Made by a program: the position numbers and the translations under genes. Under the pieces are notes generated by a model. It was not told the DNA's origin and made no database searches. It was given only the letters and a program-made list of their open reading frames with translations. This document shows, in pieces, positions 3,358 through 54,038 of a DNA stretch of 64,000 bases. The first letter of the stretch is position 1; each line of letters starts with the position of its first letter. Where the stretch lies: sequence record NC_048046.1; one strand, written 5' to 3'.

Positions 3358-4218
3358 ATGGCGCGCCTTTTCGTTTCTCCTGAAGTCGCGAACAACTTCG
3401 TCGTCCACGAGTATGATGAAGTCGCGCGCCGTTCGCCTGAAGTGAACGCTGCCATCTTGGCCGATTATGAGGCGGGCAAGGTAGTCTGCTTGAAGGGATG
3501 GAAGCTCGCGTACGATTCCGCGTTCTTTGCGTCTGTAGCGCTGGAGAATAACCGTCCTGCCAAGAAGCTGAAGAGTTGGGTCGACCAGGAGGGCACTATT
3601 GAGGGTAAGCCTCTTCGTAAGGCGTTGATCCAATCAGGAGCCCCGGAGCATCAGGCCGACCGTTTTGTCGCGCAGGCTGAGTCGCTCGCGCTGCAAATTG
3701 CGCCCGTAATCGACACGATCTTTGCGGGCATGCAGTTTCGCGAACGCCGCTTTACTTGGCGCATGCTGGAGACTCTGCACGAAGACCTTCATGTTGATTC
3801 CTACGGTGAAGACAAGGATGATCACCTTGTCCGGGCCTTCATCAACCTCGATATCGTACCGCGCCTTTGGCATACCAGCTTCAGTGTTGAAGCTCTCTTC
3901 GATCGCTACGGCGATCGCCTCACCGATGCCGAGATCGCTGAGGGTAGTCCGAATAGCCTCATTCGCCTTCTGAGTGAGCGCGTTTTCGGCGGAATGGCGA
4001 ACGCCGGCTTCGATCGAGAGCCGCGTCACGCGGCATTCTTTGACCCCGGAGATATCTGGCTGGTCGATAGCCGCAAGGTTTCCCATCAAATTATGTTCGG
4101 CCGCCGTGCGCTGACGGTGGACTATGTGGCCGAAGCTAACTCCATGGCTCGTCCCGCGCTCTATTACCAGAACGCGGTGCGGGATTACTGCAAGAGGCGA
4201 ACGAACGCCTCGACTTAG
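3358..4218 (+). CDS. Kdo hydroxylase (KdoO)-like Fe(II) dioxygenase
   Basis: Motifs LHVDSY, VRAFINL...PRLW and FDPGDIWLVDSRKVSHQ match the HxD...H pattern of the Kdo hydroxylase family. Confidence 0.7.
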   Translation: MARLFVSPEVANNFVVHEYDEVARRSPEVNAAILADYEAGKVVCLKGWKLAYDSAFFASVALENNRPAKKLKSWVDQEGTIEGKPLRKALIQSGAPEHQADRFVAQAESLALQIAPVIDTIFAGMQFRERRFTWRMLETLHEDLHVDSYGEDKDDHLVRAFINLDIVPRLWHTSFSVEALFDRYGDRLTDAEIAEGSPNSLIRLLSERVFGGMANAGFDREPRHAAFFDPGDIWLVDSRKVSHQIMFGRRALTVDYVAEANSMARPALYYQNAVRDYCKRRTNAST

Positions 4219-4227
4219 GAGAACGAC

Positions 4228-4422
4228 ATGCGTCCTTACTCCCCGCCCACCGATATCGGCCGCACGATCGCCGGCCACGAAGTCCATCACCTCACTGCCG
4301 ATCATCCTCGCAATCACGCGCGCCGCGCCGCCAAGCGGCTGCGTCACGCGGCCCGCCAGTACGATCGCCAACTTATTTGCCAGGAAGTCGCCAACTTTCT
4401 TGACACCGATCGAGCGGCCTGA
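4228..4422 (+). CDS. Hypothetical protein
   Basis: AGGAG RBS; 64-aa ORF. Confidence 0.65.
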   Translation: MRPYSPPTDIGRTIAGHEVHHLTADHPRNHARRAAKRLRHAARQYDRQLICQEVANFLDTDRAA

Positions 4423-4535
4423 TACAAGCGCATCATTATGACGTACCTGATGTCCCTTTACGAACGAGAGGCCCGCTCGGGCCGAGATACGACCGCCGCT
4501 TAACAGCGGCCCTCGTGTCAAGGCCCTGTGCTTAT

Positions 4536-4614
4536 GGGGCCTTCGTCTAAACTGGACTAAGGATAGCCGGCTTTCACCCGGCAGATGCGGGTTCGAACCC
4601 CGTAGGCCCTTCCA
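4536..4614 (+). tRNA. tRNA-Glu(TTC)
   Basis: ggggcct/aggccct, gccgg-ctTTCac-ccggc, encoded CCA. Confidence 0.9.
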
Positions 4615-4629
4615 AGCCATCCTCACTCA

Positions 4630-4704
4630 GGTGCGTTCGTATATCGGCTAATACACCGGACTGTCGATCCGGGAAGACGGGTTCGACTCCCGTACGCACC
4701 GCCA
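4630..4704 (+). tRNA. tRNA-Asp(GTC)
   Basis: ggtgcgt/acgcacc, ccgga-ctGTCga-tccgg, G73-CCA. Confidence 0.92.
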
Positions 4705-4824
4705 AGGATTCCTGATGCCCACTGGTTGATCTCCCTCCTGATGAACGAATTCCAGGAAGGAGGACCCAAATGGTCTCTCTACTAGAGCCTGCCTGCCCTC
4801 CTGGTTCGTTCAGGAGGAGCCACC

Positions 4825-5022
4825 ATGGCCCACAATATCCAGCGCTCCAAGCGCATGTTGACGCTGTCGAACGCGGCGTTGCTTCAGATCATCGCGGGCA
4901 AGACGCTCGCGTCGGCCGCCGCCCGCTTTGAGTTGAAGCGTCGCGGCTACGAAGCCGTCCTCACCAAGAAGGGAGGATGGCACTTGGCCCCCATCACTCC
5001 CCACAACGAGCCGGTGCCTTAG
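4825..5022 (+). CDS. Hypothetical protein
   Basis: Strong GGAGGAG RBS; 65 aa. Confidence 0.7.
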   Translation: MAHNIQRSKRMLTLSNAALLQIIAGKTLASAAARFELKRRGYEAVLTKKGGWHLAPITPHNEPVP

Positions 5023-5037
5023 CGCCGGCTCTTGAGA

Positions 5038-5517
5038 TCACCAGTTGTAGCGGACGAAGACGCCAGAGCCGCTCTTGTGCAGAATTTGCCAACTACGTCC
5101 CGTCCAACGAAGTTGGACGTATGAGTTGGTTAGGTTCTGGTATTGACCGACATCGCTTAGAGCGAAAATGGGCGTCACCCACAGATGCAGCCCAAAGCCG
5201 CTACCCACGGAATCGTCATACGGGTCCACGAAAAGAGGCGTTTCGAGCATCGGGAACGACAGCGTAGCCAACGCGATCGTGGGACTCTGCGGGAAGTCCA
5301 CATTGCTATCGGGAAAAGGGTTGGCGAGACGACTGGTATGGATGGTCAATTCGTCGCCAACCTTCTCACCTGGGGCCAATAGGCCGTAGCGGAAGGTTTC
5401 TTCGCTCGTAGAGGGAATTTCCGCAGGGCGCGGCACAAGGTTCAGTACCGTTTCGCCGTTAGGGTTGAGAATTTCAGCCAGATGGCGTTCCGTAGCGACC
5501 ACTTGCTTAAACAGCAT
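5038..5517 (-). CDS. Hypothetical protein, paralog of 8900..9352
   Basis: GGAG RBS before the ATG at 5517; shares YGxLAPGExxGDE and LRWTGxxW motifs with 8900..9352. Confidence 0.65.
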   Translation of the reverse strand: MLFKQVVATERHLAEILNPNGETVLNLVPRPAEIPSTSEETFRYGLLAPGEKVGDELTIHTSRLANPFPDSNVDFPQSPTIALATLSFPMLETPLFVDPYDDSVGSGFGLHLWVTPIFALSDVGQYQNLTNSYVQLRWTGRSWQILHKSGSGVFVRYNW

Positions 5518-5690
5518 GACGACTCCCATAATCAGTGAAGCCTTCTGCTTATAAGGCGTAGATCAACTGATCAACCCAATTTCCGTCAGGTTCCCGACAC
5601 CCGACCCTGATGGAGATCGCGTCCCCGACGACGCGGCGCGCCTGGATGCCCCCGCCCAGGCGCAAGCGCGGTGCCCGACCACCGCGCCCC

Positions 5691-6386
5691 TTATTCCGGA
5701 AACTGGTAGACGCGGTCCTTCCAGAAGGGCATCCCCTTCACCTCGACCATGCCCAGGCTCTCGACGAACTTGGAAGCTTCGTTGACCTCGGCGCCGTGCA
5801 TCAGCGCTTCGTTGCCACGCTGTTCCATCAGGATCACCGGCCGGCAGTGCAGGATTGTGTCCTTCGCGCCGAACACGACCGGGCCTTCGAAGCCCTCGGT
5901 GTCGATCTTGATGAAGTCGACATCGCCGTAACCGTACGAGTCGATCGTGCGGACTTCGATGGGATCGGTTACGAACGAATCGTCCCACTTGGGAGCTTCG
6001 CCATCCAGGAGCGCGTGCGAGAGTTGCCCGTGGGAGGGCTTGTATTCGAAACGCAGGGCTCCCGGCTCGCGCCCGATTGCGATTAGGTGGGCGACCAAGT
6101 CCGGGTCCTTGTGCGTGTTCAGCACGAGCGCGCCGTGGATTTCCGGAACCGCTTCGAACGCCTCCACTCGTTCGAAGGTGCGCTTCAGCAGCGTTGCCGT
6201 GATCCCGACGTTGGCGCCGACGTCCAGCGCGCGCCGGCGGCGCTTGCAGATCGCGGAAGCTGCCTTCACCTTCTTCACATCCATGTTGGGCAGCCCGTCG
6301 AGGACATCGATCGCCTGGAACCGAGCAGCATCCACGAGAGGGACGTAGAAACCGTGAGCTTTGGCATAAGCGCTGGAATGGGACAA
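5691..6386 (-). CDS. FkbM-family SAM-dependent methyltransferase
   Basis: ALDVGANVG, FIKIDTEGFE, RPVILMEQ motifs. Confidence 0.88.
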   Translation of the reverse strand: MSHSSAYAKAHGFYVPLVDAARFQAIDVLDGLPNMDVKKVKAASAICKRRRRALDVGANVGITATLLKRTFERVEAFEAVPEIHGALVLNTHKDPDLVAHLIAIGREPGALRFEYKPSHGQLSHALLDGEAPKWDDSFVTDPIEVRTIDSYGYGDVDFIKIDTEGFEGPVVFGAKDTILHCRPVILMEQRGNEALMHGAEVNEASKFVESLGMVEVKGMPFWKDRVYQFPE

Positions 6387-7033
6387 CGGAGACTCCTTGA
6401 AGATGTGCGACCCTTGGTAGCTTCAGCACGGACAGCCGTCAACGCATCGTGATTTCTTCACAAACGTTTTCACTGGCTAAGCTTGACTCTGTGGTTAACC
6501 CGACATAACGTCGTTCGTAATGCGGCTGCGCCTCGGCGCGGGCTAAAGGCAGTTCTGGGGGAAGACGGCCCTCGACGTCTTCGGGCGTCTTGCTAGTCGT
6601 CTGGACAAACGGGCTGGTGAGGGGGCGACCGCACTCGACCTCTCCGGTGAGTGACCACCCACAAGCCGCAGGCTGAATTTTTCTCTGACAGTATTCTTGA
6701 CACCCGTCTCGAACTGTGAGAGAAGCAAGACCTCAACACGGCCGAGCCCACTGCGCAAAGCGTACGGCCTCGGTTCTCTTTTTCGCCTTGGATCAGAAGA
6801 TGACCTTCTTGACGCATAAGCCGAGCACTTTGAAGCCCGCCACCGGCGCGGCCTCGCTCGCCCATGCGTCCCTTCTGACGCCGGCGACGAGCAAGCCGTC
6901 GCTATCACGGTCGCTCTAGGACTCCAGTAGTCCTCACAGAAGCGGCCGGATCACCGCCGCTTCTGCTCCCTACGCTTACTCCCCAAAGCACGGCAGACGC
7001 GGCCCCTCCAACTCGGGGATCGTTAACCATTAT

Positions 7034-7110
7034 CTGCGTATAGCTCAGTCTGGTGGAGTGCCCGTTTCGGTAACGGGAGGCCGTGGGTTCAAATCCTACT
7101 ACGCAGACCA
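7034..7110 (+). tRNA. tRNA-Pro(CGG)
   Basis: ctgcgta/tacgcag, cccgt-ttCGGta-acggg, A73-CCA. Confidence 0.9.
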
Positions 7111-7118
7111 ACTTCAGT

Positions 7119-7193
7119 CAGAGTCTGGCCGAGCGGCTAGGCACCGGTTTTGGGAGCCGGACGAGGCAGGTTCAACTCCTGCGGCTCTGACCA
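7119..7193 (+). tRNA. tRNA-Pro(TGG)
   Basis: cagagtc/ggctctg, ccggt-ttTGGga-gccgg. Confidence 0.9.
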
Positions 7194-7194
7194 T

Positions 7195-7271
7195 CAGTGT
7201 GTGGCGCAGTTTGGTAGCGCGCTTGCTCGGGATGCAAGAGGTCGCAGGTTCAAATCCTGCTACACTGACCA
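7195..7271 (+). tRNA. tRNA-Pro(GGG)
   Basis: cagtgtg/tacactg, cttgc-tcGGGat-gcaag (C33). Confidence 0.88.
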
Positions 7272-7277
7272 GTTTAA

Positions 7278-7350
7278 GCTGTCGCGTGTGGATTCACGCC
7301 GGCCCCTTGGTATGGGGAAGTAGAAGGTTCAATTCCTTCCGGCAGCACCA
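7278..7350 (+). tRNA. tRNA-Thr(GGT), atypical compact D-arm
   Basis: gctgtcg/cggcagc, cccc-ttGGTat-gggg, T-arm gaagg-ttcaatt-ccttc, CCA. Confidence 0.75.
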
Positions 7351-7355
7351 AGTTC

Positions 7356-7425
7356 GCCGATGCTTCAGGGAAGAAGTGTCTTTCGTAGTGACGCCAGGAG
7401 GGTTCGAGTCCTTCCATCGGCACCA
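7356..7425 (+). tRNA. tRNA-Thr(CGT), atypical compact D-arm
   Basis: gccgatg/catcggc, loop ttCGTag, T-arm gaggg-ttcgagt-ccttc, CCA; 70 nt. Confidence 0.7.
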
Positions 7426-7465
7426 GTTTAATTCTTGATCCGAGGAGATCAGATGTAGACAAAAT

Positions 7466-7546
7466 GGATCGTGAGCTTAATTCCGGGTGGCCGGGACCGT
7501 CCTCTTAAGTCGAGAGCAAGTGGTTCGACTCCACCACGATCCTCCA
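7466..7546 (+). tRNA. Atypical or degenerate tRNA-Lys(CTT)-like
   Basis: ggatcgt/acgatcc acceptor, T-loop ttcgact, CCA; ctCTTaa loop, but anticodon and D stems pair poorly. Confidence 0.5.
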
Positions 7547-7552
7547 AAACAT

Positions 7553-7642
7553 GGGTGAGTTCTCCGAGCGGTCGAAGGGGAGTGACTCTTAATCACTTGG
7601 ACGAAAGTCCCACCGTGGGTTCGAATCCCACCTCACCCTCCA
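7553..7642 (+). tRNA. tRNA-Lys(CTT) with a long variable arm
   Basis: gggtgag/ctcaccc, agtga-ctCTTaa-tcact, variable hairpin ggac-gaaa-gtcc, CCA. Confidence 0.85.
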
Positions 7643-14652: not shown

Positions 14653-14741
14653 TCTCATGTGGCGGAACTGGTAAACGCACCGGACTGTTAATCCGGCGTC
14701 TCGCAAGAGACTTGGGGGTTCGAAGCCCTCCGTGAGAGCCA
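14653..14741 (+). tRNA. tRNA-Asn(GTT) with a long variable arm
   Basis: tctcatg/cgtgaga, ccgga-ctGTTaa-tccgg, variable hairpin gtctc-gcaa-gagac, G73. Confidence 0.88.
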
Positions 14742-44444: not shown

Positions 44445-45094
44445 TGAGCCGCTTCTGGAAGGCCCAGAAGTGGCACCCCAACAAGACCTGCTTCATCGTC
44501 GGTGGAGGCCCAAGCCTTAAGGGCATGGACCTCTCCGGCCTTGACGGACGACTCGTAATCACCGCGAACAACGCCTACCAGTTGGTGAAGGAGCCTGACA
44601 CGATCTTCTTCGCCGATACGCGTTGGTGGCGCTGGCATCGTGAGCGCATCGGCGAGTTCCGAGGACGGATCGTGACTGCGGCGTCGTCGCGCGACTTTGG
44701 TGATGGCCGCGTCTGTCGTATGGGTCGTGACTACAGCTTTACCAAGGACGAGGGACCTGCACTCGCTCGGGACCCCTCGATGCTGTGTGGTGCCGACAGT
44801 GGCTATATGGCGATCAACCTCGCCTACCACTATGGCGTCAGCCGCATCGTGCTCCTGGGCTTCGACATGGGTTTTATGGGCGGCGAGGCCCACTGGCATC
44901 CGGACCATCCGATCGCCACGCCAGAGTCACATTACGTGGATCGATTCGGGCCAACCTATCCCGCCTTGATCGCGGCCTTGAAGAAGGAAAACGTCGAGGT
45001 GCTGCGCAGCACGCCTTCGCGGCTGGACTTCATTCCGGAAGTCGCCTTGGCCGATGCCCTCGAACTGCCGGATCGATTCCACGGCCGTCTCTAG
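44444..45094 (+). CDS. GT29/Maf/MptE-like nucleotide-sugar transferase domain protein
   Basis: FIVGGGPSL, SGYMAINLAYHYG..RIVLLGFDM. Confidence 0.7.
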   Translation: MSRFWKAQKWHPNKTCFIVGGGPSLKGMDLSGLDGRLVITANNAYQLVKEPDTIFFADTRWWRWHRERIGEFRGRIVTAASSRDFGDGRVCRMGRDYSFTKDEGPALARDPSMLCGADSGYMAINLAYHYGVSRIVLLGFDMGFMGGEAHWHPDHPIATPESHYVDRFGPTYPALIAALKKENVEVLRSTPSRLDFIPEVALADALELPDRFHGRL

Positions 45095-45143
45095 GGCGCC
45101 AGTATTCTTGACACGTTAACCCTATTCGCCTTAAGACCTAGGG

Positions 45144-45977
45144 ATGCCCAAGGCTTACGTCCATCTCCTGGAAGCGGTCCACTACCGCCGCGATGCGTTC
45201 GTCAACGGCTTCGCGCGTCTGGGCTATATCGTTGAGCGCGGCACGCCGGCAGTCCCGTTGGCGCCCGATGATGTCGTGGTGATCTGGAATAAGACGGCGC
45301 GTTCTGCCCAGGCTCTTCGGATGGCACGCAAGAACGGTGCGGCCGTCCTCGTGGCCGAGAACGGTTACTTCGGGAAGGACGCTAACGGGCACCAGCCCTA
45401 CGCCCTAGCGCTCGACGGGCATAACGGATCAGGGCGTTGGTATGCGCCAGATTCTTCGCGTCTCGATCGCTTGAATGTACCGTTCGAGCCCTTGCGTGCT
45501 CCTGGGATGGGCAAGGTTCTGATTGCCGATCAACGCGGCATCGGTAGCCAAAAGATGCGCTCGCCGCCCAAGTTCGGCGTGCAGATGTTGGAGCGCCTGA
45601 CGCACCATCAGCCGTTCCGCCAGATCGAGCTTCGAGCGCATCCCGGACGCCATGCTGCCGGGGTGTCGCTGGAGCGTGACCTGGAGGATTGCGACGCGCT
45701 TGTGGTCTGGTCTTCGAATTGCGCAACTCTCGCGCTTCAGAAGGGCATTCCCGTCCACTACTGCGCACCCGCGATCGCCTCGGCCGGCGCCGCTAAGCCA
45801 TTCATGCCGAGCTTGCGCGCCTCCTTCACGGAGACAGAGCGCCGTGAGGCCTTTTCCAATATGGCCTGGGCGCAGTGGTTCCTAGACGAGATCGCCAGCG
45901 GCGAGGCGATGCGCACACTGCTTGACGTATATGCGGGCAAGCTTCCCTCCGTTTCACCGGGCATTGACCTCGCATGA
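45144..45977 (+). CDS. KpsC/KpsS-like GT-B glycosyltransferase
   Basis: ENGYF and LVVWSSNCATLALQKGIPV motifs. Confidence 0.6.
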   Translation: MPKAYVHLLEAVHYRRDAFVNGFARLGYIVERGTPAVPLAPDDVVVIWNKTARSAQALRMARKNGAAVLVAENGYFGKDANGHQPYALALDGHNGSGRWYAPDSSRLDRLNVPFEPLRAPGMGKVLIADQRGIGSQKMRSPPKFGVQMLERLTHHQPFRQIELRAHPGRHAAGVSLERDLEDCDALVVWSSNCATLALQKGIPVHYCAPAIASAGAAKPFMPSLRASFTETERREAFSNMAWAQWFLDEIASGEAMRTLLDVYAGKLPSVSPGIDLA

Positions 45978-46819
45978 TCCGACCGCCTCATAACCCTCTA
46001 TTCCAGCCGCCGGTCTGCATCATCCAGCGTGGTAAGCCCAAGTCTCAGATGCTCGCGGAAGCGATCGTCAAGGGCGCCCGTGGCGGCAAGATCATGGTCG
46101 CGCCGCATGTGAGCGATTTGCCGGCTGGACATGTCCCGGTCGTGATCGGGGCGCACCCCACGACCATCGAGACGCTGCGAGCGCTCCACTACAACGGGCA
46201 CCCCTACGTCTACGTGGATAACGGCTACTTCCATCCGTACAAGAGCGGCGGCTATTTCCGCGCCACCTGCAATGCGCTCCAATGGGTCGATCGCTGGCCC
46301 TACGATCGCGCCGAGGCGCGAAACCGCTGGGAAAGTCACAAGCTGAAGGTCGCGCCCTGGCGGGAAGAAGGCGACCATGTGCTGATCGCCCTTCAGACTC
46401 CGACTTGGTATCAGATGATGGGCGTCGATCAGGACGCCTGGGTGCGCGATGTCCTGGAGCGTCTGACGCCGTGGACGAAGCGTAAGATCATCGTCCGCCA
46501 GAAGCCGCTCAAGGGCATCCAGGTCCCTCCTCTGGAGGAAGAACTGAAGAACGCCTGGGCGGTGGTCGCCTATTCCTCGAACGTCATGCTCGACGCATCC
46601 CTTCAGGGCATCGCTGTCTTCCCGCAGCGGTCGTGCGCCGCGCAAGCCCTGGGCACCGGACAGCTATCGCGTATCGAGGAGCCTCGCCGGGTGTTCGACC
46701 GCGAAGGCGTCTATGAAGAACTCGCAGCAGCGCAGTGGACCGTCCCCGAGATGGAATCCGGGAAGATGTGGAACGACCTGCGCTGCCAGTACCAGCCTGA
46801 ATTTGGACGTCTTGCATGA
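45974..46819 (+). CDS. KpsC/KpsS-like GT-B glycosyltransferase, paralog
   Basis: DNGYF and VVAYSSNVMLDASLQGIAV motifs. Confidence 0.6.
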   Translation: MIRPPHNPLFQPPVCIIQRGKPKSQMLAEAIVKGARGGKIMVAPHVSDLPAGHVPVVIGAHPTTIETLRALHYNGHPYVYVDNGYFHPYKSGGYFRATCNALQWVDRWPYDRAEARNRWESHKLKVAPWREEGDHVLIALQTPTWYQMMGVDQDAWVRDVLERLTPWTKRKIIVRQKPLKGIQVPPLEEELKNAWAVVAYSSNVMLDASLQGIAVFPQRSCAAQALGTGQLSRIEEPRRVFDREGVYEELAAAQWTVPEMESGKMWNDLRCQYQPEFGRLA

Positions 46820-47601
46820 CCCTTCACGTCTTCGTCGGCTACGACATTCGCGAGCACGCCGCCTGGATGGTGTGCCGCGACAGTCTGCTCAATCCGATCG
46901 CCTACGAAGGCGACGCGCCGCTGGATGTCCAGGTCCATCCTGTCTCCCACCGTGAACTGCGCCGCGCCGGCGTCTTCGATCGTCCCTGGCGAATCGACGA
47001 GAAGGGTCAGACCTGGGACGAGCGAGACGGCCGCCCGTTCTCGACCGAGTTCAGTCACTCGCGTTTTCTGGTCCCGTCTCTGGCGCAAGCGATGGGTTTG
47101 ACCGGGCAAGTCGTCTTCGTCGACTGCGATTTCATGTTCATGCACTCGGTGGTCGACATGGTCGATGCGCTCGATCCGACCAAGCTGGTGTCAGTGGTCA
47201 AGCATGACTTCGAGCGGATCGCGGCCGGCACGAAGATGGATGGCATGTCCCAGAGCCGCTACTATCGCAAGCTCTGGTCGAGCCTGATGGTGTTCAACCT
47301 CGATCACGAGGATGCACACCTCTTCCATCCGCACTACGCCAACACCTGGGACGGGTCCAGCCTGCACGGCTTCCAGCCTCTGACGGATGCTGAGATCGGC
47401 GACATCCCCAGCGAGTGGAACCACATCCCCGGCCATTCCTCGGCGAACGAAGTCCCGTCTGCGATCCACTGGTCTTTCGGCGGTCCCTGGATGCCGGCCT
47501 ACGAAAAGGCAGCATGGGCGCCGCTGTGGCGCGCTCGCTACGTCCAGGTGATGCAGGATGCCTTGACCGACGATATCTCCACCACTTTCCCGATCCTGTG
47601 A
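46816..47601 (+). CDS. GT-A fold glycosyltransferase (GT8-like)
   Basis: FVGYD, STEFSHSRFLVP, DxD (FVDCD), RKLWSS, EWNH. Confidence 0.8.
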   Translation: MTLHVFVGYDIREHAAWMVCRDSLLNPIAYEGDAPLDVQVHPVSHRELRRAGVFDRPWRIDEKGQTWDERDGRPFSTEFSHSRFLVPSLAQAMGLTGQVVFVDCDFMFMHSVVDMVDALDPTKLVSVVKHDFERIAAGTKMDGMSQSRYYRKLWSSLMVFNLDHEDAHLFHPHYANTWDGSSLHGFQPLTDAEIGDIPSEWNHIPGHSSANEVPSAIHWSFGGPWMPAYEKAAWAPLWRARYVQVMQDALTDDISTTFPIL

Positions 47602-47603
47602 CC

Positions 47604-48110
47604 ATGCTGATCAGTACCCAATATCAGGCGCTCAATGCGCAACTCCACGCGGACATCGCGACCTACGGCGCCGGCGGCTGGCAGTGGATCGGTCCTGCCC
47701 TGAAGTTCGCTGAGCATCTGGGCGTCCGCACCATCCTCGACTATGGCTGTGGCAAGGCGAGCTTCGGCGAATGGACGCCGGGCGATTATGTCGTGCTCCC
47801 CTATGATCCGGTGACCTATCCCGGTGAGCGTCCGGCTTGCGGCATGGTCGTCTGTCTCGACGTCATGGAACACATCGAGCCGGATTGTCTGGATTCGGTC
47901 CTGCGCCACATCCGCTCGAAGGCTGAACGCGGCGCTTTCTTCGTGATCGCGATGCGGCCGGCTCAGAAGACGCTGGCCGATGGGCGCAACGCCCACCTGA
48001 TCGTGGAGGACGCGAAGTTCTGGATCAACAAGCTCCACGAGCACTTCACGTCTACCGAAATCGTCAACATCGGCCGCCCCGATGAACTGGTCGTGCGTGC
48101 GAAGGTCTGA
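47604..48110 (+). CDS. Class I SAM-dependent methyltransferase
   Basis: ILDYGCGK; DVMEHI. Confidence 0.85.
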   Translation: MLISTQYQALNAQLHADIATYGAGGWQWIGPALKFAEHLGVRTILDYGCGKASFGEWTPGDYVVLPYDPVTYPGERPACGMVVCLDVMEHIEPDCLDSVLRHIRSKAERGAFFVIAMRPAQKTLADGRNAHLIVEDAKFWINKLHEHFTSTEIVNIGRPDELVVRAKV

Positions 48111-48112
48111 GT

Positions 48113-48988
48113 ATGGGTTACGGCGACAAGTTGATGGCGATCGGCGACGCCTGGGCGATGCACCAGCGCGATCCGATGAAGCGGAAGGTGGCGATCGGTG
48201 ATGGCCGCAACATCGATAAGACGGACCTCAATCTGACTTGGGGCCTGGAGCATTTTCTAGCGACTCAGGAAGAGGTCGACGCTGGGTATCCGATCAATTG
48301 GGTCATCAGCTACCCAGGCAATCGCCCCTACATCGACTACGGCGCCGTGCGCTCAGCGCTGGTCAACCAAGGCATTCGGCTCATCAAGCCGCGCAAGATG
48401 ATCGGAAAGCTGGGGCGCTACATCTTCGATCTCTCGTATCGTCCGCGCCCGGCTCCGATCAAGCTAACGCCCGAGGAAGAAGCCATCGCCGCCGAATGGG
48501 CCGCCAAGGGTCCGTTCGTACTGATCGAAGGCTTCACCAAGGCACGCGCCTCGCCGAACAAGCAGTGGCCCGTGGATCGATTCCGCGAAGTCGCCCGCAC
48601 GCTGAAGCGGGAAATCCCGGTCTATCAGATCGGTGCGGCCGGCACGATGCCGCTGCTGCCGAGCTTGCCGCAAATCCGCCCCGAGAGCTTCCGCCAGTCT
48701 CTGGCATACCTGAAGGCGGCTTCGCTCTACATCGGCCCCGAGGGCGGATTGCATCACGGCTCTCGTGCGATGAACACGCGTGCGGTGGTGATCTATGGCG
48801 GGTTCACGTCCCCTCTCATCACGGGGTACCCCGACCTGCACATCAATTTGACCGGGGACAACGAGGGCCGCGCCTGCGGTTCGAAGAACGAGTGCATGCA
48901 CTGTACCAAGGCGCTCCAGAGCATCTCGGCTGGAGAAGTCCTGGCGCACGCTCGTCGGCAACTGGAGAAGGTCCATGCTGGACTCTAA
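48113..48988 (+). CDS. GT9 (heptosyltransferase-like) glycosyltransferase
   Basis: GYGD, NKQWP, YIGPEGGLHH motifs. Confidence 0.8.
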   Translation: MGYGDKLMAIGDAWAMHQRDPMKRKVAIGDGRNIDKTDLNLTWGLEHFLATQEEVDAGYPINWVISYPGNRPYIDYGAVRSALVNQGIRLIKPRKMIGKLGRYIFDLSYRPRPAPIKLTPEEEAIAAEWAAKGPFVLIEGFTKARASPNKQWPVDRFREVARTLKREIPVYQIGAAGTMPLLPSLPQIRPESFRQSLAYLKAASLYIGPEGGLHHGSRAMNTRAVVIYGGFTSPLITGYPDLHINLTGDNEGRACGSKNECMHCTKALQSISAGEVLAHARRQLEKVHAGL

Positions 48989-49238
48989 GCCGGGCTATCA
49001 CGTCGCTGAAATCCCCAAGGGCGTCCTGGGCGAACCGTCCAAGATCGCCGAAGAACACGCCGAGTTCCAGGACGCGGTCTCTCAGGGCATCAAGATCATG
49101 GCCCTGGTCGAACTGGCGGACCTCTACGGCGCCATCAAGAAGTACCTCGAAAAGCACCATCCCGGCGTCACCTTCGACGACCTGGACGCCATGAGCTTCG
49201 TCACCGAAAGGGCATTCATCAATGGCCGCCGCGCTTAA
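48975..49238 (+). CDS. Small protein, possibly MazG-like NTP pyrophosphohydrolase
   Basis: KIAEEHAEF...ELADL acidic pattern. Confidence 0.5.
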   Translation: MLDSKPGYHVAEIPKGVLGEPSKIAEEHAEFQDAVSQGIKIMALVELADLYGAIKKYLEKHHPGVTFDDLDAMSFVTERAFINGRRA

Positions 49239-50076
49239 TTGGCGGGATTTCCCCGTCGCCGACTGTGAGTTCAGTGTCAAAGCGCTGAACGCGATCTGGA
49301 ACGATCACGGACCGAACGCCACCCTGGGCATGCTCGCCTCCAAGACCGATGAGGAACTGGTGCGCTCAGCCCACATCGGACGCAAAACGCTGAAGGAAAT
49401 CCGATCCATGATCGACTACATCTCGCAGCAACACCCCGATCCGGCACCGCAACGTCCGATCTTCATCCCGCACGCGACTATCGACTGGTCGTTGCTGGCG
49501 CGCGCCGTGGACTTCTATCAGGCCCAGGGCTTCAAGTACGTCGAGATGCCCTGGGCGGTCAGCCGCGAGAGTGTCGCGATCACCTGTCCGAAGCCGGAGT
49601 TCACCGCTGAGGTCGACGGTCTGGGCAGCCTCGTGGGGTCGGCCGAGCAGTCGTTCCTGCACATGGACCTCGCCGGCAAGTTGGGTAAGGGGCGCTTCTG
49701 CGCCCTGACGCCGTGCTTCCGGCTGGGCGACTACGAGGACGATCTGCATCACCCCTACTTCATGAAGGTCGAACTCTACGCCAATAACGCCGAGGGCATT
49801 TCGGTGATGATGGGGGACGAGGAGGTGGCTCCGCCCGAAGCGCGTGCTATGATGTCGCTCCTCCACATGATGAGCATCGTCGGCCAGTTCAATCGTTCGG
49901 AGTTGACTGCCGAGGAACTCGCGAATGTCCATGGCGTCCAGACGGCCGAAGGCTACGACATCGAACTGAACGGTATCGAGATCGGCAGCTACGGCGTCCG
50001 CCAGCATGGCGACCACACCTGGGTCTACGGCACCGGTGTCGCCGAGCCGCGCTTCTCGCAAGCCCGCCGCGCCTAG
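49222..50076 (+). CDS. RNAP alphaCTD-like domain fused to a class II aminoacyl-tRNA synthetase-like catalytic domain
   Basis: N-terminal FSVKALN...SKTDEELVRSAHIGRKTLKEI; C-terminal GFKYVEMP (motif 1), CFR..HHPYFMKVE (motif 2), GTGVAEPR (motif 3). Confidence 0.72.
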   Translation: MAAALNWRDFPVADCEFSVKALNAIWNDHGPNATLGMLASKTDEELVRSAHIGRKTLKEIRSMIDYISQQHPDPAPQRPIFIPHATIDWSLLARAVDFYQAQGFKYVEMPWAVSRESVAITCPKPEFTAEVDGLGSLVGSAEQSFLHMDLAGKLGKGRFCALTPCFRLGDYEDDLHHPYFMKVELYANNAEGISVMMGDEEVAPPEARAMMSLLHMMSIVGQFNRSELTAEELANVHGVQTAEGYDIELNGIEIGSYGVRQHGDHTWVYGTGVAEPRFSQARRA

Positions 50077-52175: not shown

Positions 52176-52209
52176 AAAGCTCGCCTCTAATCGGGGCGGG
52201 CTTTCTTTT
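52176..52209 (+). terminator. Terminator-like hairpin
   Basis: aaagctcgcctc-taatc-ggggcgggcttt followed by ctttt. Confidence 0.7.
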
Positions 52210-52589: not shown

Positions 52590-53999
52590 TTAGTCGCGGA
52601 CACCCTCCGGCAGAAGCGCCTCGCCGATGACGCCGGCCGCTTCGGCTTCATGGATGAAGCGCAGGACCGATTCCGAGAAGCCGTCGATGTGCGTCCACTT
52701 GCCGTAGCCCACGCCGTTCTTGTTCGAAGCGACGTTGATCACGTACGAGTGCTTTGCCTTCGGCGCCGGCATGCTGCCGCCGCCCAGCATGTGGTTGACG
52801 CTCGCGCCCGAGGCTTGCTCATCGGTGATGATGATCAGGCGATCGAACTCGAACTTCGCCTGGACAGTGGCGACGGCTTGAACGAGCGCCGTGCCACCGT
52901 AAGGCTGCGAGCGAGCGATCGCTTCGACGCCGGCCATGCCCTTGCGAGCCGGCACTTCCACCACCGAGTTCGAGAAGCTGATCACGCGCAGGTCTTCGGC
53001 CGGGATGACCGAAGCCAGGGCGCAGGCAGCATCACGACGCGTCAGATCGGACTTGGCCGACAGGCGGTCCCGCATCGAACCCGACACGTCCACCATGACC
53101 ACGGTGCGGCCCGGCAGCTTCGGCATGTCGGCGATCGACGCGATCAGCGCTTCATCCAGGGCCGGTTCGAACGACGGTGCCGCACGAGCCGCCGCGATGT
53201 AGCGGAACGGCAGGACGCGGTGCGCGCCGCCCTTGCGGGCCTTAATCGCATCGATCACCAGCTTGCGGTCGACGCCGGCCTGTTCCATGTTGCGCAGGTT
53301 GCGCAGCAGGGCGAGGTAGCCGAGCTTCTTGTCTTCCAGCAGACGGGTGAACTCCGCCTTCTTGTCACCGCCGGCCGACAGCGCGACTTCCCAGGTGTCC
53401 GGCGACTCCAGCGTCTGTTCGACCAGACCCTTGTACAGGGTTTGACGTTCGTCGTTGGCGGCCTTCGGGTGGCTCAGGAACAGCACGTCACGCAGACGCA
53501 CCTCCTTGGCGCGGTCGTACTTGGCGATCTGGTACGCGTCGAACTTCGCGAACGCCTTGGCGAGGCCCAGCTTCATTTGCTTGGACAGCGGAGCCTTGCG
53601 GGCGCCGTCGCGCGGCGGGTTGTACTTCCAGTACAGCGCCACCAGTTCCGACAGTTCGTCGGCGCGCTGGATCACGCGGGCGATCGTCTCGGAGACGAGG
53701 CCGTTGCCCGAGCCGCGCTTGGCCAGGGTGACGAGCAGCAGCAGCGGCACGTGACGCAGGTTGGCGACTTCACGGGCTTCGATGGCGATCTGAGCCAGGG
53801 TGTCGACCGGGACCTGCTCGGCCAGCTTGGCGATGCGGGTGCTGATCTCGACGCCGTCCTCGTAGGCCTCGTTCTCGAACAGGAGGCAGGACATCACCGA
53901 CCGGCGCAGCGCCTGGACGGTCGTCATGCGGGCAGCGGTCGCGCCCTCGTGCGTCTTTTCGGTGAAGGTGTTCTTGGTCGAACGGTTGGTCGATGCCAT
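52590..53999 (-). CDS. rsr: Ro60/TROVE-domain RNA-binding protein with a C-terminal vWA domain
   Basis: THEGA, LRRSVMSCLLFE, DTWEV, LGYLALLRNLRNM, LPFRY, vWA MIDAS DVSGSM and ITDEQ. Confidence 0.92.
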   Translation of the reverse strand: MASTNRSTKNTFTEKTHEGATAARMTTVQALRRSVMSCLLFENEAYEDGVEISTRIAKLAEQVPVDTLAQIAIEAREVANLRHVPLLLLVTLAKRGSGNGLVSETIARVIQRADELSELVALYWKYNPPRDGARKAPLSKQMKLGLAKAFAKFDAYQIAKYDRAKEVRLRDVLFLSHPKAANDERQTLYKGLVEQTLESPDTWEVALSAGGDKKAEFTRLLEDKKLGYLALLRNLRNMEQAGVDRKLVIDAIKARKGGAHRVLPFRYIAAARAAPSFEPALDEALIASIADMPKLPGRTVVMVDVSGSMRDRLSAKSDLTRRDAACALASVIPAEDLRVISFSNSVVEVPARKGMAGVEAIARSQPYGGTALVQAVATVQAKFEFDRLIIITDEQASGASVNHMLGGGSMPAPKAKHSYVINVASNKNGVGYGKWTHIDGFSESVLRFIHEAEAAGVIGEALLPEGVRD

Positions 54000-54038
54000 G
54001 GTCGGGTCGGCTCCTCTACTGCGTCAAAGGTTGACCGC

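Follow-up and report, generated by a model that had tools for sequence, protein, structure and literature searches.

Caulobacter phage CcrPW (308 kb; Dolichocephalovirinae, Colossusvirus) encodes a protein, gp446, in which a domain resembling the C-terminal domain of the RNA polymerase alpha subunit (alphaCTD) is joined by a linker to a minimal core of the class II aminoacyl-tRNA synthetase type. Its gene lies in a stretch of 64,000 nucleotides of sequence record NC_048046.1, hereafter the window (100% identical to CcrPW; subtracting 62,000 from a record position gives the window position), and overlaps the preceding gene, which encodes a small MazG-like protein, gp447 (Table 1). The pairing of this core with a MazG-like protein is near-obligate among the relatives that we surveyed, and gp446 is likely to be a class II enzyme that is active, has no role in translation and is functionally coupled to its MazG-like neighbour. 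It is not a translational histidyl-tRNA synthetase (HisRS) or seryl-tRNA synthetase (SerRS). The product of the target open reading frame (ORF) is identical to CcrPW YP_009809309.1, named 'histidyl tRNA synthetase' in RefSeq, and its orthologue CcrColossus gp133 (91% identical) is named 'putative RNA polymerase alpha subunit C-terminal domain protein', so that each label covers one half of gp446. The alphaCTD had already been spotted by the CcrColossus annotators, and the CcrPW gene is present in databases under a wrong name.

The core (residues 86–281 match PHROG 4806 with E=4e-41) carries class II motifs 1, 2 and 3 in order, with both arginines invariant, and is predicted to adopt the antiparallel beta-sheet fold of the superfamily. 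As the gp446 chain ends 7 residues past the motif 3 arginine, it lacks an anticodon-binding domain. In the AlphaFold2 (AF2) model (pLDDT 92.8), a helical N-terminal domain and an alpha/beta core are connected by a linker (residues ~71–88) that is the sole low-confidence stretch between the two domains, and the pTM of 0.76 suggests that their relative position is not fixed. The best 50 matches of the model in the PDB (Foldseek) are all class II catalytic domains, namely pyrrolysyl-tRNA synthetase (PylRS), the alpha subunit of phenylalanyl-tRNA synthetase (PheRS) and SerRS, with E values of 5e-9 to 2e-7. A first-pass annotation, made from the letters of the window alone, had proposed class II motifs 1–3 without an anticodon-binding domain and had left the folds to be checked by structure prediction; both points hold.

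The residues expected of a working active site are fixed across the family. In an alignment of 73 core sequences with about 40% pairwise identity, W111, T121, G139, S140, E142, Q143, P164, C165, R167, F180, K182, E184, L185, D246, E253, G255, S256, W267, G270, T271, P276 and R277 are invariant in 73/73. These include the whole G-S-x-E-Q signature of the loop aligned with the SerRS 'TxE' substrate loop (G139, S140, E142 and Q143), in which serine takes the place of the TxE threonine. We take the invariant positions to be those that bind ATP, Mg2+ and the serine moiety in SerRS structures. Such invariance at this level of overall divergence points to an active enzyme that forms adenylates, with serine as its most plausible substrate.

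The affinity to SerRS emerged from a search of all PDB sequences with a core-only family profile. SerRS came first, with a best E of 1.3e-6, about 20 distinct sequences at E<=1e-3 and bacterial, eukaryotic and archaeal SerRS cores as the best matches, followed at a distance by aspartyl- (AspRS; 0.07), asparaginyl- (AsnRS; 0.43) and pyrrolysyl-tRNA synthetases (1.4). No HisRS or HisZ chain appeared among the matches of this search at E<=10, and it returned no similarity to lysyl-tRNA synthetase (LysRS), EpmA or methanogen-type SerRS. The core is collinear with E. coli SerRS throughout, as seen in the block pairs (SerRS first) LIPTAEVPL/LVGSAEQSF, TPCFRSE/TPCFRLG, HQFDKVEMV/PYFMKVELY, TYDLEVW/GYDIELN, REISSCS/IEIGSYG and LNGSGLAVGR/VYGTGVAEPR, and gp446 displays the SerRS core signature of a TxE loop, F-x-K-V-E, E-x-x-S and G-[ST]-G-x-A-x-x-R. 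A structure search of BFVD returned a giant-virus SerRS as the closest full-length synthetase (2e-9). With moderate confidence we therefore call the core 'SerRS-like', a subclass assignment that is not certain. The resemblance, which runs collinearly from the TxE loop through motif 2, the YD-x-E strand and E-x-x-S to motif 3, contrasts with what has been removed: gp446 has neither the coiled-coil arm with which SerRS binds tRNA nor its first ~170 residues and C-terminal tail, several SerRS loops are deleted, and the core is paired with a MazG-like protein. Stand-alone members of the family start about 5 residues before the helix that precedes motif 1.

Two other subclass assignments were considered. 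A class IIb (AspRS-like) reading of the segment YDIELNGIEIGSYGVRQH finds support in weak matches to Pfam tRNA-synt_2 and NCBIfam aspS, but the profile favours SerRS by about 5 orders of magnitude, and the same block is also collinear with SerRS. Pfam tRNA-synt_2 matches 21/73 members (best 7e-8, mostly below cutoff), tRNA-synt_2b matches 3/73 weakly, and the NCBIfam matches on gp446 are sub-threshold rpoA and aspS fragments only. The HisRS label was rejected because no HisRS is found among the PDB profile matches and the chain stops after motif 3.

The core defines a discrete family of very small proteins. At E<=1e-3, a search of 1.84 billion representative proteins with its profile gave 1,677 clusters (1,159 of them at E<=1e-30), nearly all 175–215 aa long and usually ~185; canonical synthetases are not among these matches, which sets the core apart as a family of its own. 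A tblastn search located the core in 246 phage records, including phi92/rV5-like coliphages, T4-like Acinetobacter phages, Vequintavirinae of Cronobacter, Pectobacterium and Erwinia, Microcystis phage Ma-LMM01 and other Caulobacter jumbo phages. Its cellular occurrence is confined to 35 of about 186,000 species. Existing labels for the core vary between 'histidyl tRNA synthetase', 'putative seryl-tRNA synthetase', 'putative tRNA synthetase' and hypothetical protein.

The coupling to a MazG-like protein, which the first-pass annotation had overlooked, is the most consistent feature of the genomic context. When gp447 was compared by phmmer with all ORFs of 121 sequences (120 loci plus the window), a homologue was found in 118 of the 121. 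It precedes the core on the same strand in 88, lies downstream in 12 and shares one ORF with the core in 18. No other neighbour occurs in more than about 20% of loci. In the 18 loci with natural fusions, the core is N-terminal and the MazG-like domain C-terminal in a protein of 265–298 aa. Other N- or C-terminal extensions in the core family contain no recognizable Pfam domain except PRA-PH (phosphoribosyl-ATP pyrophosphohydrolase). The predicted structure of one natural fusion (pLDDT 95.9, pTM 0.88) ends in a domain of three long helices (pLDDT >95) that matches a phage 'MazG-like domain protein' in BFVD with 40% identity and a root mean square deviation of 2.0 A.

gp447 itself belongs to PHROG 6408 ('unknown function'; E=7.5e-38) and is 67% identical to its CcrBL9 equivalent and 51% identical to phi92 gp197, which is annotated with a MazG-type fold; between CcrPW and phi92 the partner is thus better conserved than the core (about 30% identity). 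Among 101 unique partner sequences, the motifs E26-E27-x-x-E30-x-x-D33 and E46-x-x-D49 are 89–99% conserved, and Y8, H9, K23, T77, F81 and R86 are also kept. Judged by these motifs, the partner would carry the twin metal-binding signature of all-alpha nucleoside triphosphate (NTP) pyrophosphohydrolases. Database labels for the partner range from hypothetical protein to 'phosphoribosyl-ATP pyrophosphatase' and 'MazG-like'. PADLOC returned no match for gp446, gp447 or a core–MazG fusion.

This pairing connects the core to a described anti-defence protein. The MazG-like protein Atd1 of Pectobacterium phage PcCB7V, which has twin catalytic motifs, came from a screen of uncharacterised ORFs of <200 aa within four genes of phage nucleotidyltransferases (NTases); the purified protein hydrolyses ppGpp (Km about 50 uM) and not ribonucleoside triphosphates (rNTPs) or c-di-GMP, and Atd1 lowers cellular (p)ppGpp and protects against TIR-STING and retron-TIR (10.1101/2022.06.09.495361). 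That study treats it as a stand-alone NTase-associated anti-defence gene, lists the PcCB7V NTase as QQG33502.1 in Table S1 and never mentions a synthetase (10.1101/2022.06.09.495361). By tblastn, the mini-synthetase is present in PcCB7V, and the PcCB7V protein QQG33500.1 (86 aa) matches the hidden Markov model of the partner with E=6e-38. QQG33500.1 is the only twin-motif ORF of <200 aa among the eight genes within four positions of QQG33502.1; because the paper prints no accession, we identify it as Atd1 by elimination, and gp447, which shares the twin EExxE/ExxD motifs and the family of QQG33500.1, would on the same grounds belong to the Atd1 family. Of about 117 loci, only 4 have the Ho et al. 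NTase close to the module, whereas the core is near-constant, and the constant companion of the Atd1 family is therefore the class II core, for a protein that had been described as standing alone. As ppGpp is cleaved and GTP is not, Atd1 needs a 3'-pyrophosphate. The PcCB7V stretch reads, in order, CCA-adding tRNA nucleotidyltransferase, peptidyl-tRNA hydrolase (Pth), three small ORFs, MNT-like NTase, Atd1-like MazG and mini-synthetase, and its predicted products appear to be a concentration of tRNA-3'-end and nucleotide enzymes.

The alphaCTD is a genuine but taxonomically restricted addition to this system. Residues 10–62 of gp446 match Pfam RNA_pol_A_CTD (25.9 bits against a gathering cutoff of 23.8, E=8e-6) and contain two helix-hairpin-helix units with the G-x-K-S hairpin of PF03118; 13 relatives match the same model (best E=1.7e-9). 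A phmmer search of the PDB with the single gp446 protein retrieved RNA polymerase alpha or alphaCTD chains only (best E=9e-4), and AF2 models the helices 19–29, 35–39, 43–47 and 54–70 with pLDDT 96–98. The first-pass annotation, which had seen an alphaCTD at residues ~8–65, is supported by both the Pfam and the PDB matches. Aligned to E. coli RpoA 245–329, gp446 keeps D259, E261, N268 (N23), G296 and K298 and replaces R265 (K20) and S299 (T) conservatively; the position of R265 is K or R in most alphaCTD-fused members, and the second helix-hairpin-helix, N-[IV]-G-R-[KR]-[TS], which corresponds to RpoA N294-L-G296-K-K298-S299, is nearly invariant in the fused clade. From the E. coli literature, we presume that these positions represent the '265 determinant', which contacts the DNA minor groove, and the sigma-contacting '261 determinant'. 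The domain thus resembles the alphaCTD of RpoA in having both helix-hairpin-helix units and nucleic-acid-binding positions conserved or conservatively replaced, and differs from it in being detached from the alpha N-terminal domain (alphaNTD), placed at the N terminus of an enzyme and only 21–32% identical to the E. coli domain. The alphaNTD, the assembly domain of RpoA, is not found in gp446, as NCBIfam rpoA models match over their C-terminal ~55 positions only, with scores of 17–21 against cutoffs of 228–302. As to whether the domain came from a host rpoA or elsewhere, a homology search restricted to this region returned the query alone.

The fusion also occurs in the independently sequenced CcrColossus and in Brevundimonas phages, and 27 N-terminally extended proteins (42–85% identity) all fall in one clade of 30 in a maximum-likelihood tree (support 98/83), which dispels the concern of the first-pass annotation that it might be a frameshift artefact; the three short members of the clade could be losses or truncated calls. 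All alphaCTD-fused relatives examined share the gene order partner, extended core, lysozyme. The same annotation had suggested checking whether relatives encode the two domains separately: the core does stand alone in >95% of relatives, as a protein of ~185 aa, but those relatives lack the alphaCTD altogether. Together, the single fused clade and the rarity of the domain indicate that the alphaCTD is an accessory gained once, in the Caulobacter/Brevundimonas jumbo-phage lineage, and not the heart of the system.

Table 1 Features of the gp446 locus and of related loci. Positions refer to the window for CcrPW and otherwise to the named sequence.
Feature	Position	Strand	Description
gp446 (target ORF)	49222..50076	+	284 aa; alphaCTD, linker and minimal class II core
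gp447 (partner)	48975..49238	+	87-aa MazG/PRA-PH-like all-alpha pyrophosphohydrolase; last 17 nt overlap the start of gp446
alphaCTD-like helix-hairpin-helix domain	49249..49407	+	gp446 residues 10–62; Pfam PF03118
Pro-rich flexible linker, HPDPAPQRPIFIPHATID	49432..49485	+	Residues 71–88; AF2 block of pLDDT 72–83
Minimal class II core, SerRS-like	49477..50073	+	Residues 86–284; PHROG 4806
Motif 1 region, GFKYVEMPW	49528..49554	+	Class II dimer-interface motif; G103 and P110 at least 90% conserved, W111 invariant
LVGSAEQSF	49630..49656	+	Aligned with the SerRS 'TxE' substrate loop by HMM alignment to E. coli and Aquifex SerRS
Motif 2, TPCFRLGD...HHPYFMKVELY	49708..49779	+	Invariant Arg167 and F180/K182/E184
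YDIELNGIEIGSYGVRQH	49954..50007	+	Collinear with SerRS YDLEVW...REISSCS; D246, E253, G255 and S256 invariant, R260 in 72/73
Motif 3, WVYGTGVAEPRF (YGTGVAEPRF)	50020..50055	+	Invariant G270, T271, P276 and R277
Sugar-modifying gene block	44445-48988	+	Between the giant tail protein gene and the MazG-like gene
Intrinsic-terminator-like hairpin	52176..52204	+	First strong one downstream of the pair
TROVE/Ro60-like 'RNA-binding protein' gene	~52590-54000	-	CcrColossus gp139 orthologue; right after the lysis cassette
tRNA-Trp(CCA), tRNA-Lys(CTT), tRNA-Asn(GTT)	2854-2939, 7553-7642, 14653-14741	+	CcrPW; long base-paired variable arms
PcCB7V stretch	L126 594-4076 and L130 (100.5-107.2 kb)		Gene order given in the text
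Conserved cellular cluster with fused gene	L094, L097, L099, L103, L108, L110 and L120, about 4000-7500 each		DPANN archaea/Methanosarcinales bins

Tentatively, and with distinctly less confidence than in the coupling itself, we propose that gp446 is the SerRS-type catalytic subunit of a two-component enzyme with gp447, which would act on a nucleotide bearing a ribose-3' function and keep infected cells out of arrest. The core would bind ATP together with a small amino acid, serine being the most likely one, and form an acyl-adenylate, probably seryl-adenylate. In complex with gp447, gp446 would then act on its nucleotide, for which alarmones of the (p)ppGpp type and tRNA CCA-3' ends are candidates, with the outcome that infected cells may avoid the arrest of starvation or abortive infection. 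The alphaCTD, confined to the Caulobacter/Brevundimonas clade of jumbo phages, could tether the complex to nucleic acid or to partners of RNA polymerase, possible targets being the DNA minor groove, UP-element-like sites or RNA. We are less confident about any specific acceptor for gp446.

Several observations weigh against this proposal. Atd1 is active alone in vitro and in vivo (10.1101/2022.06.09.495361). The core is therefore not needed for ppGpp hydrolysis. Within the core, the loop of motif 2 has 6 residues fewer than that of E. coli SerRS, and the glutamate of the canonical fRxE is present in 34/73 members, with G then D in 32/73, including gp446. The subclass signals are not unanimous either, since Pfam matches of the 73 individual members favour D/K/N and F models, and Foldseek places PylRS and PheRS about level with SerRS, so that the three are not separable by structure. 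On the partner side, Pfam PRA-PH matches stay below cutoff (E 0.02–0.055, at the same motif in 4 independent homologues; 0.0023 in the fused protein P0186), an hhalign comparison with E. coli MazG was not significant (probability 1.7%), and the partner profile found no significant match in the PDB. The CcrPW pair lies 34 kb from the tRNA arrays of its genome. Finally, fused core–MazG genes reside on contigs that resemble genuine genomes of DPANN archaea or of the candidate phyla radiation (CPR), where they lie among genes such as those for archaeal DTD2, Trm1 and RtcA, for an AI-2E transporter and for an ATP-grasp protein. To our knowledge, (p)ppGpp signalling of the RelA/SpoT type is generally lacking in archaea, and on this understanding the archaeal occurrence argues against (p)ppGpp as the universal substrate of the family. 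The genes that cluster with the fusions, encoding radical-SAM, AAA_28 and CYTH proteins, suggest a more general nucleotide chemistry.

The best-surviving alternative, which we nevertheless consider unlikely, is a tRNA acceptor-end enzyme, in which the core docks CCA-3' ends and either charges deacylated tRNAs without anticodon recognition or, with the MazG-like subunit, repairs 3' ends blocked by host toxins, for example by the 3'-pyrophosphate of CapRel/toxSAS-type defences; the alphaCTD may then stand in for the tRNA-binding arm of SerRS, whose N-terminal position it shares. Genomic neighbourhoods lend this some weight. tRNA genes lie within +-6 kb of the core in 28/60 sampled loci, and about 12 loci sit inside tRNA arrays, among them that of CcrBL9, where the pair lies between tRNA-Thr and tRNA-Glu/Asp; the array neighbourhoods make a tie of the core to tRNAs plausible. 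Directly downstream of the phi92 pair is gp195 (L003 4592-5026), a YqeY/GatB-tail-like protein of the tRNA-binding type (Pfam PF09424, E=5e-7; PHROG 1460 'tRNA amidotransferase'). The CCA-adding enzyme and Pth near the PcCB7V module, DTD2, Trm1 and RtcA in archaeal loci and the long-variable-arm tRNAs encoded by CcrPW point the same way, and toxSAS-modified tRNA carries a 3'-pyrophosphate, the same group that Atd1 targets. Against these stand the >95% of the family without any RNA-binding appendage and the shortened motif 2 loop, which in SerRS contacts the acceptor stem. SerRS truncated at its N terminus loses tRNA charging, and indiscriminate serylation would be toxic to the phage too. Three of these neighbours are, moreover, lineage-specific: a YqeY-like gene was found beside the module nowhere else among the loci except for one weak match in L041, and the Pth and CCA-adding enzyme accompany it in PcCB7V only.

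The CcrPW tRNAs with long arms are 86–90 nt long, have variable-arm stems of 3–5 bp and encoded CCA ends, and score 38.6–53 bits in Rfam, below the other tRNAs; CcrBL9 has a similar 87-nt tRNA-Lys(CTT). A long variable arm is normally found only in tRNA-Ser, tRNA-Leu and tRNA-Tyr and is the main identity element for SerRS, and by this analogy mis-serylation of the long-arm tRNAs, or another tie to the SerRS-like core, is conceivable. ARAGORN also predicts tRNAs with a CTA anticodon ('tRNA-Pyl') at L041 12076-12151 and L071 211-286, both large viral contigs with the module, which are possibly suppressor tRNAs of stop-codon-recoded phages.

A bolder and more improbable form of the same idea makes the core and its MazG-like subunit a tRNA 3'-end rescue machine, with the core as the smallest natural class II synthetase-type enzyme. 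The pyrophosphatase would strip the 3'-pyrophosphate set on tRNA by CapRel/toxSAS-type defences, and the core, docked on the CCA end, would at once re-acylate or shield the tRNA; in the Caulobacter/Brevundimonas phages the alphaCTD would serve as a nucleic-acid handle replacing the lost SerRS arm, and its favoured substrates might include the long-variable-arm phage tRNAs. The design of class II cores for holding A76, together with the need of Atd1 for a 3'-pyrophosphate, would make 3'-pyrophosphorylated tRNA an attractive candidate substrate.

Ranking behind the acceptor-end enzyme and likewise unlikely is a small-molecule pathway, in which the pair would make or process an aminoacyl- or otherwise modified nucleotide. 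By analogy with PurZ–MazZ or AsnA-type chemistry, the MazG-like protein would turn a (modified) NTP into the monophosphate and pyrophosphate, the core would ligate a carboxylate or amino acid, and ppGpp hydrolysis would be a side activity. The fusion of two enzymes suggests consecutive steps, and the core is small and free of macromolecule-binding domains. The cellular genes with fusions add further weight: a small radical-SAM/Fer4_12 protein, which matches generic MoaA/NrdG/viperin N-terminal regions only, directly adjoins the fused gene in 8/17 fused loci, 4 loci have an AAA_28 kinase-like protein, sometimes joined by a CYTH domain (L110), and a divergent protein of 272–290 aa (279 aa in one description) without assigned function is found in 9, so that the cluster may represent an uncharacterised nucleotide-modifying pathway. 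In phages, however, the module has none of these cluster genes beside it, and Atd1 is inactive on rNTPs. The residues aligned with the alpha-amino-acid-binding positions of SerRS are invariant, which also speaks against this pathway, and no candidate product is known.

The reading of the first-pass annotation, protein aminoacylation in the manner of EpmA or of amino acid:carrier protein ligases with the alphaCTD as a mimic that recruits host activators or DNA, fares much worse, and we regard it as very unlikely. Some stand-alone class II paralogues do aminoacylate proteins, the catalytic residues of gp446 are intact, and alphaCTD residues matching the 261, 265 and 287 determinants are kept. 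Yet the only conserved partner is a MazG-like enzyme and not a carrier protein or a protein like elongation factor P (EF-P), no EF-P or EpmB neighbour was found at 117 loci, the PDB profile search gave no similarity to EpmA, LysRS or methanogen-type SerRS, and an alphaCTD missing from nearly the whole family cannot define its substrate. The amino acid:carrier protein ligases and EpmA/PoxA are truncated class II cores that form adenylates and transfer them to non-tRNA acceptors; gp446 is like them in possessing a class II core without an anticodon-binding domain, and differs in a core about 100 aa smaller and in the lack of a carrier-protein or EF-P context.

A fainter prospect still is a non-catalytic subunit, with the core as a ligand sensor that controls the MazG-like enzyme or the alphaCTD as a decoy competing with host RNA polymerase alpha for UP elements or activators. 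HisZ, a non-catalytic class II paralogue, is a precedent as the regulatory subunit of the nucleotide-metabolising enzyme HisG, Atd1 is active alone and the alphaCTD is well conserved; on the other side, all 73 sequences share the motif 2 and 3 arginines, E253/S256 and the residues of the substrate loop, as is typical of an active enzyme, and the alphaCTD is limited to one clade. The likeness to HisZ–HisG (with HisE/PRA-PH) is conceptual, in that a tRNA-free class II paralogue acts there as a subunit, a MazG-fold PRA-PH belongs to the same pathway and PRA-PH is the only Pfam signal of the partner; by contrast, the gp446 core is SerRS-like and not HisRS-like, no HisG is present and the catalytic residues are retained. 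That gp446 is a bona fide histidyl- or seryl-tRNA synthetase supplementing host translation is almost certainly wrong: the RefSeq and PHROG name 'histidyl tRNA synthetase', the 'putative seryl-tRNA synthetase' label of some GenBank relatives and the SerRS-like core speak for it, and against it stand the absence of any HisRS match in the PDB profile search, the missing anticodon-binding domain, coiled-coil arm and C-terminal extension, a core of about 185–200 aa compared with the 420–430 aa of SerRS, and the clean separation of the family from canonical synthetases.

Among compact class II enzymes, PylSc (or truncated PylRS) and PheRS alpha are the top Foldseek matches (E about 5e-9, TM about 0.46–0.51 over the whole two-domain query) and, like the two-component enzyme that we favour, are small cores working with a separate module, in their case for tRNA binding; their identity to gp446 is, however, only 13–18%, and the profile puts PylRS (E=1.4) far below SerRS (1e-6). 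In having shed tRNA-recognition modules, gp446 resembles the amino acid:carrier protein ligases, EpmA, AsnA and HisZ. By the features compared here, it would nevertheless fall outside SerRS proper, HisRS, EpmA and the amino acid:carrier protein ligases.

In CcrPW, the pair follows a block of glycosyltransferase and methyltransferase genes and immediately precedes the lysis cassette. The block includes alpha-2,3-sialyltransferase-like, nucleotide-diphospho-sugar transferase-like, FkbM/class I methyltransferase and GT9 (heptosyltransferase-like) genes and is kept in CcrColossus and in a metagenomic relative, L128 (MptE-like and Methyltransf_23 genes), which suggests glycosylation of virion or host structures. 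No convincing promoter- or terminator-like site was found on the + strand from about 47.1 kb to 51.4 kb of the window, and CcrColossus has an annotated terminator at the place equivalent to the hairpin downstream of the pair; gp447 and gp446 thus appear to be co-transcribed with the upstream glycosyltransferase block and the downstream lysis cassette. The first-pass annotation had also mentioned Y RNAs as conceivable substrates of the core, and an Rfam scan of the whole window detected no Y RNA or other non-tRNA family at gathering score.

Literature searches for a link between a phage mini-synthetase and MazG found no paper on the core family. Relative to that searchable literature, three features appear to be new: a size of ~185 aa with a seemingly complete active site, the constant MazG-like/Atd1 partner including Rosetta-stone fusions, and the grafting of an alphaCTD. 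Our results correct a misannotation that is propagating, as HisRS and SerRS labels on relatives, across at least 246 phage records. We know of no smaller natural class II synthetase-like enzyme with a full active site, and the size of the core bears on minimal 'urzyme' synthetases and on how cores gain acceptor specificity in trans. An alphaCTD attached to an enzyme is an unusual way to address catalysis to DNA or RNA polymerase. The family is present in well-studied, genetically tractable phages (phi92/rV5-like phages, T4-like Acinetobacter phages and Caulobacter phages). With the core, Atd1 gains a previously unnoticed constant partner, so that the unit studied so far may be only half of a system, and (p)ppGpp may not be its only or true substrate.

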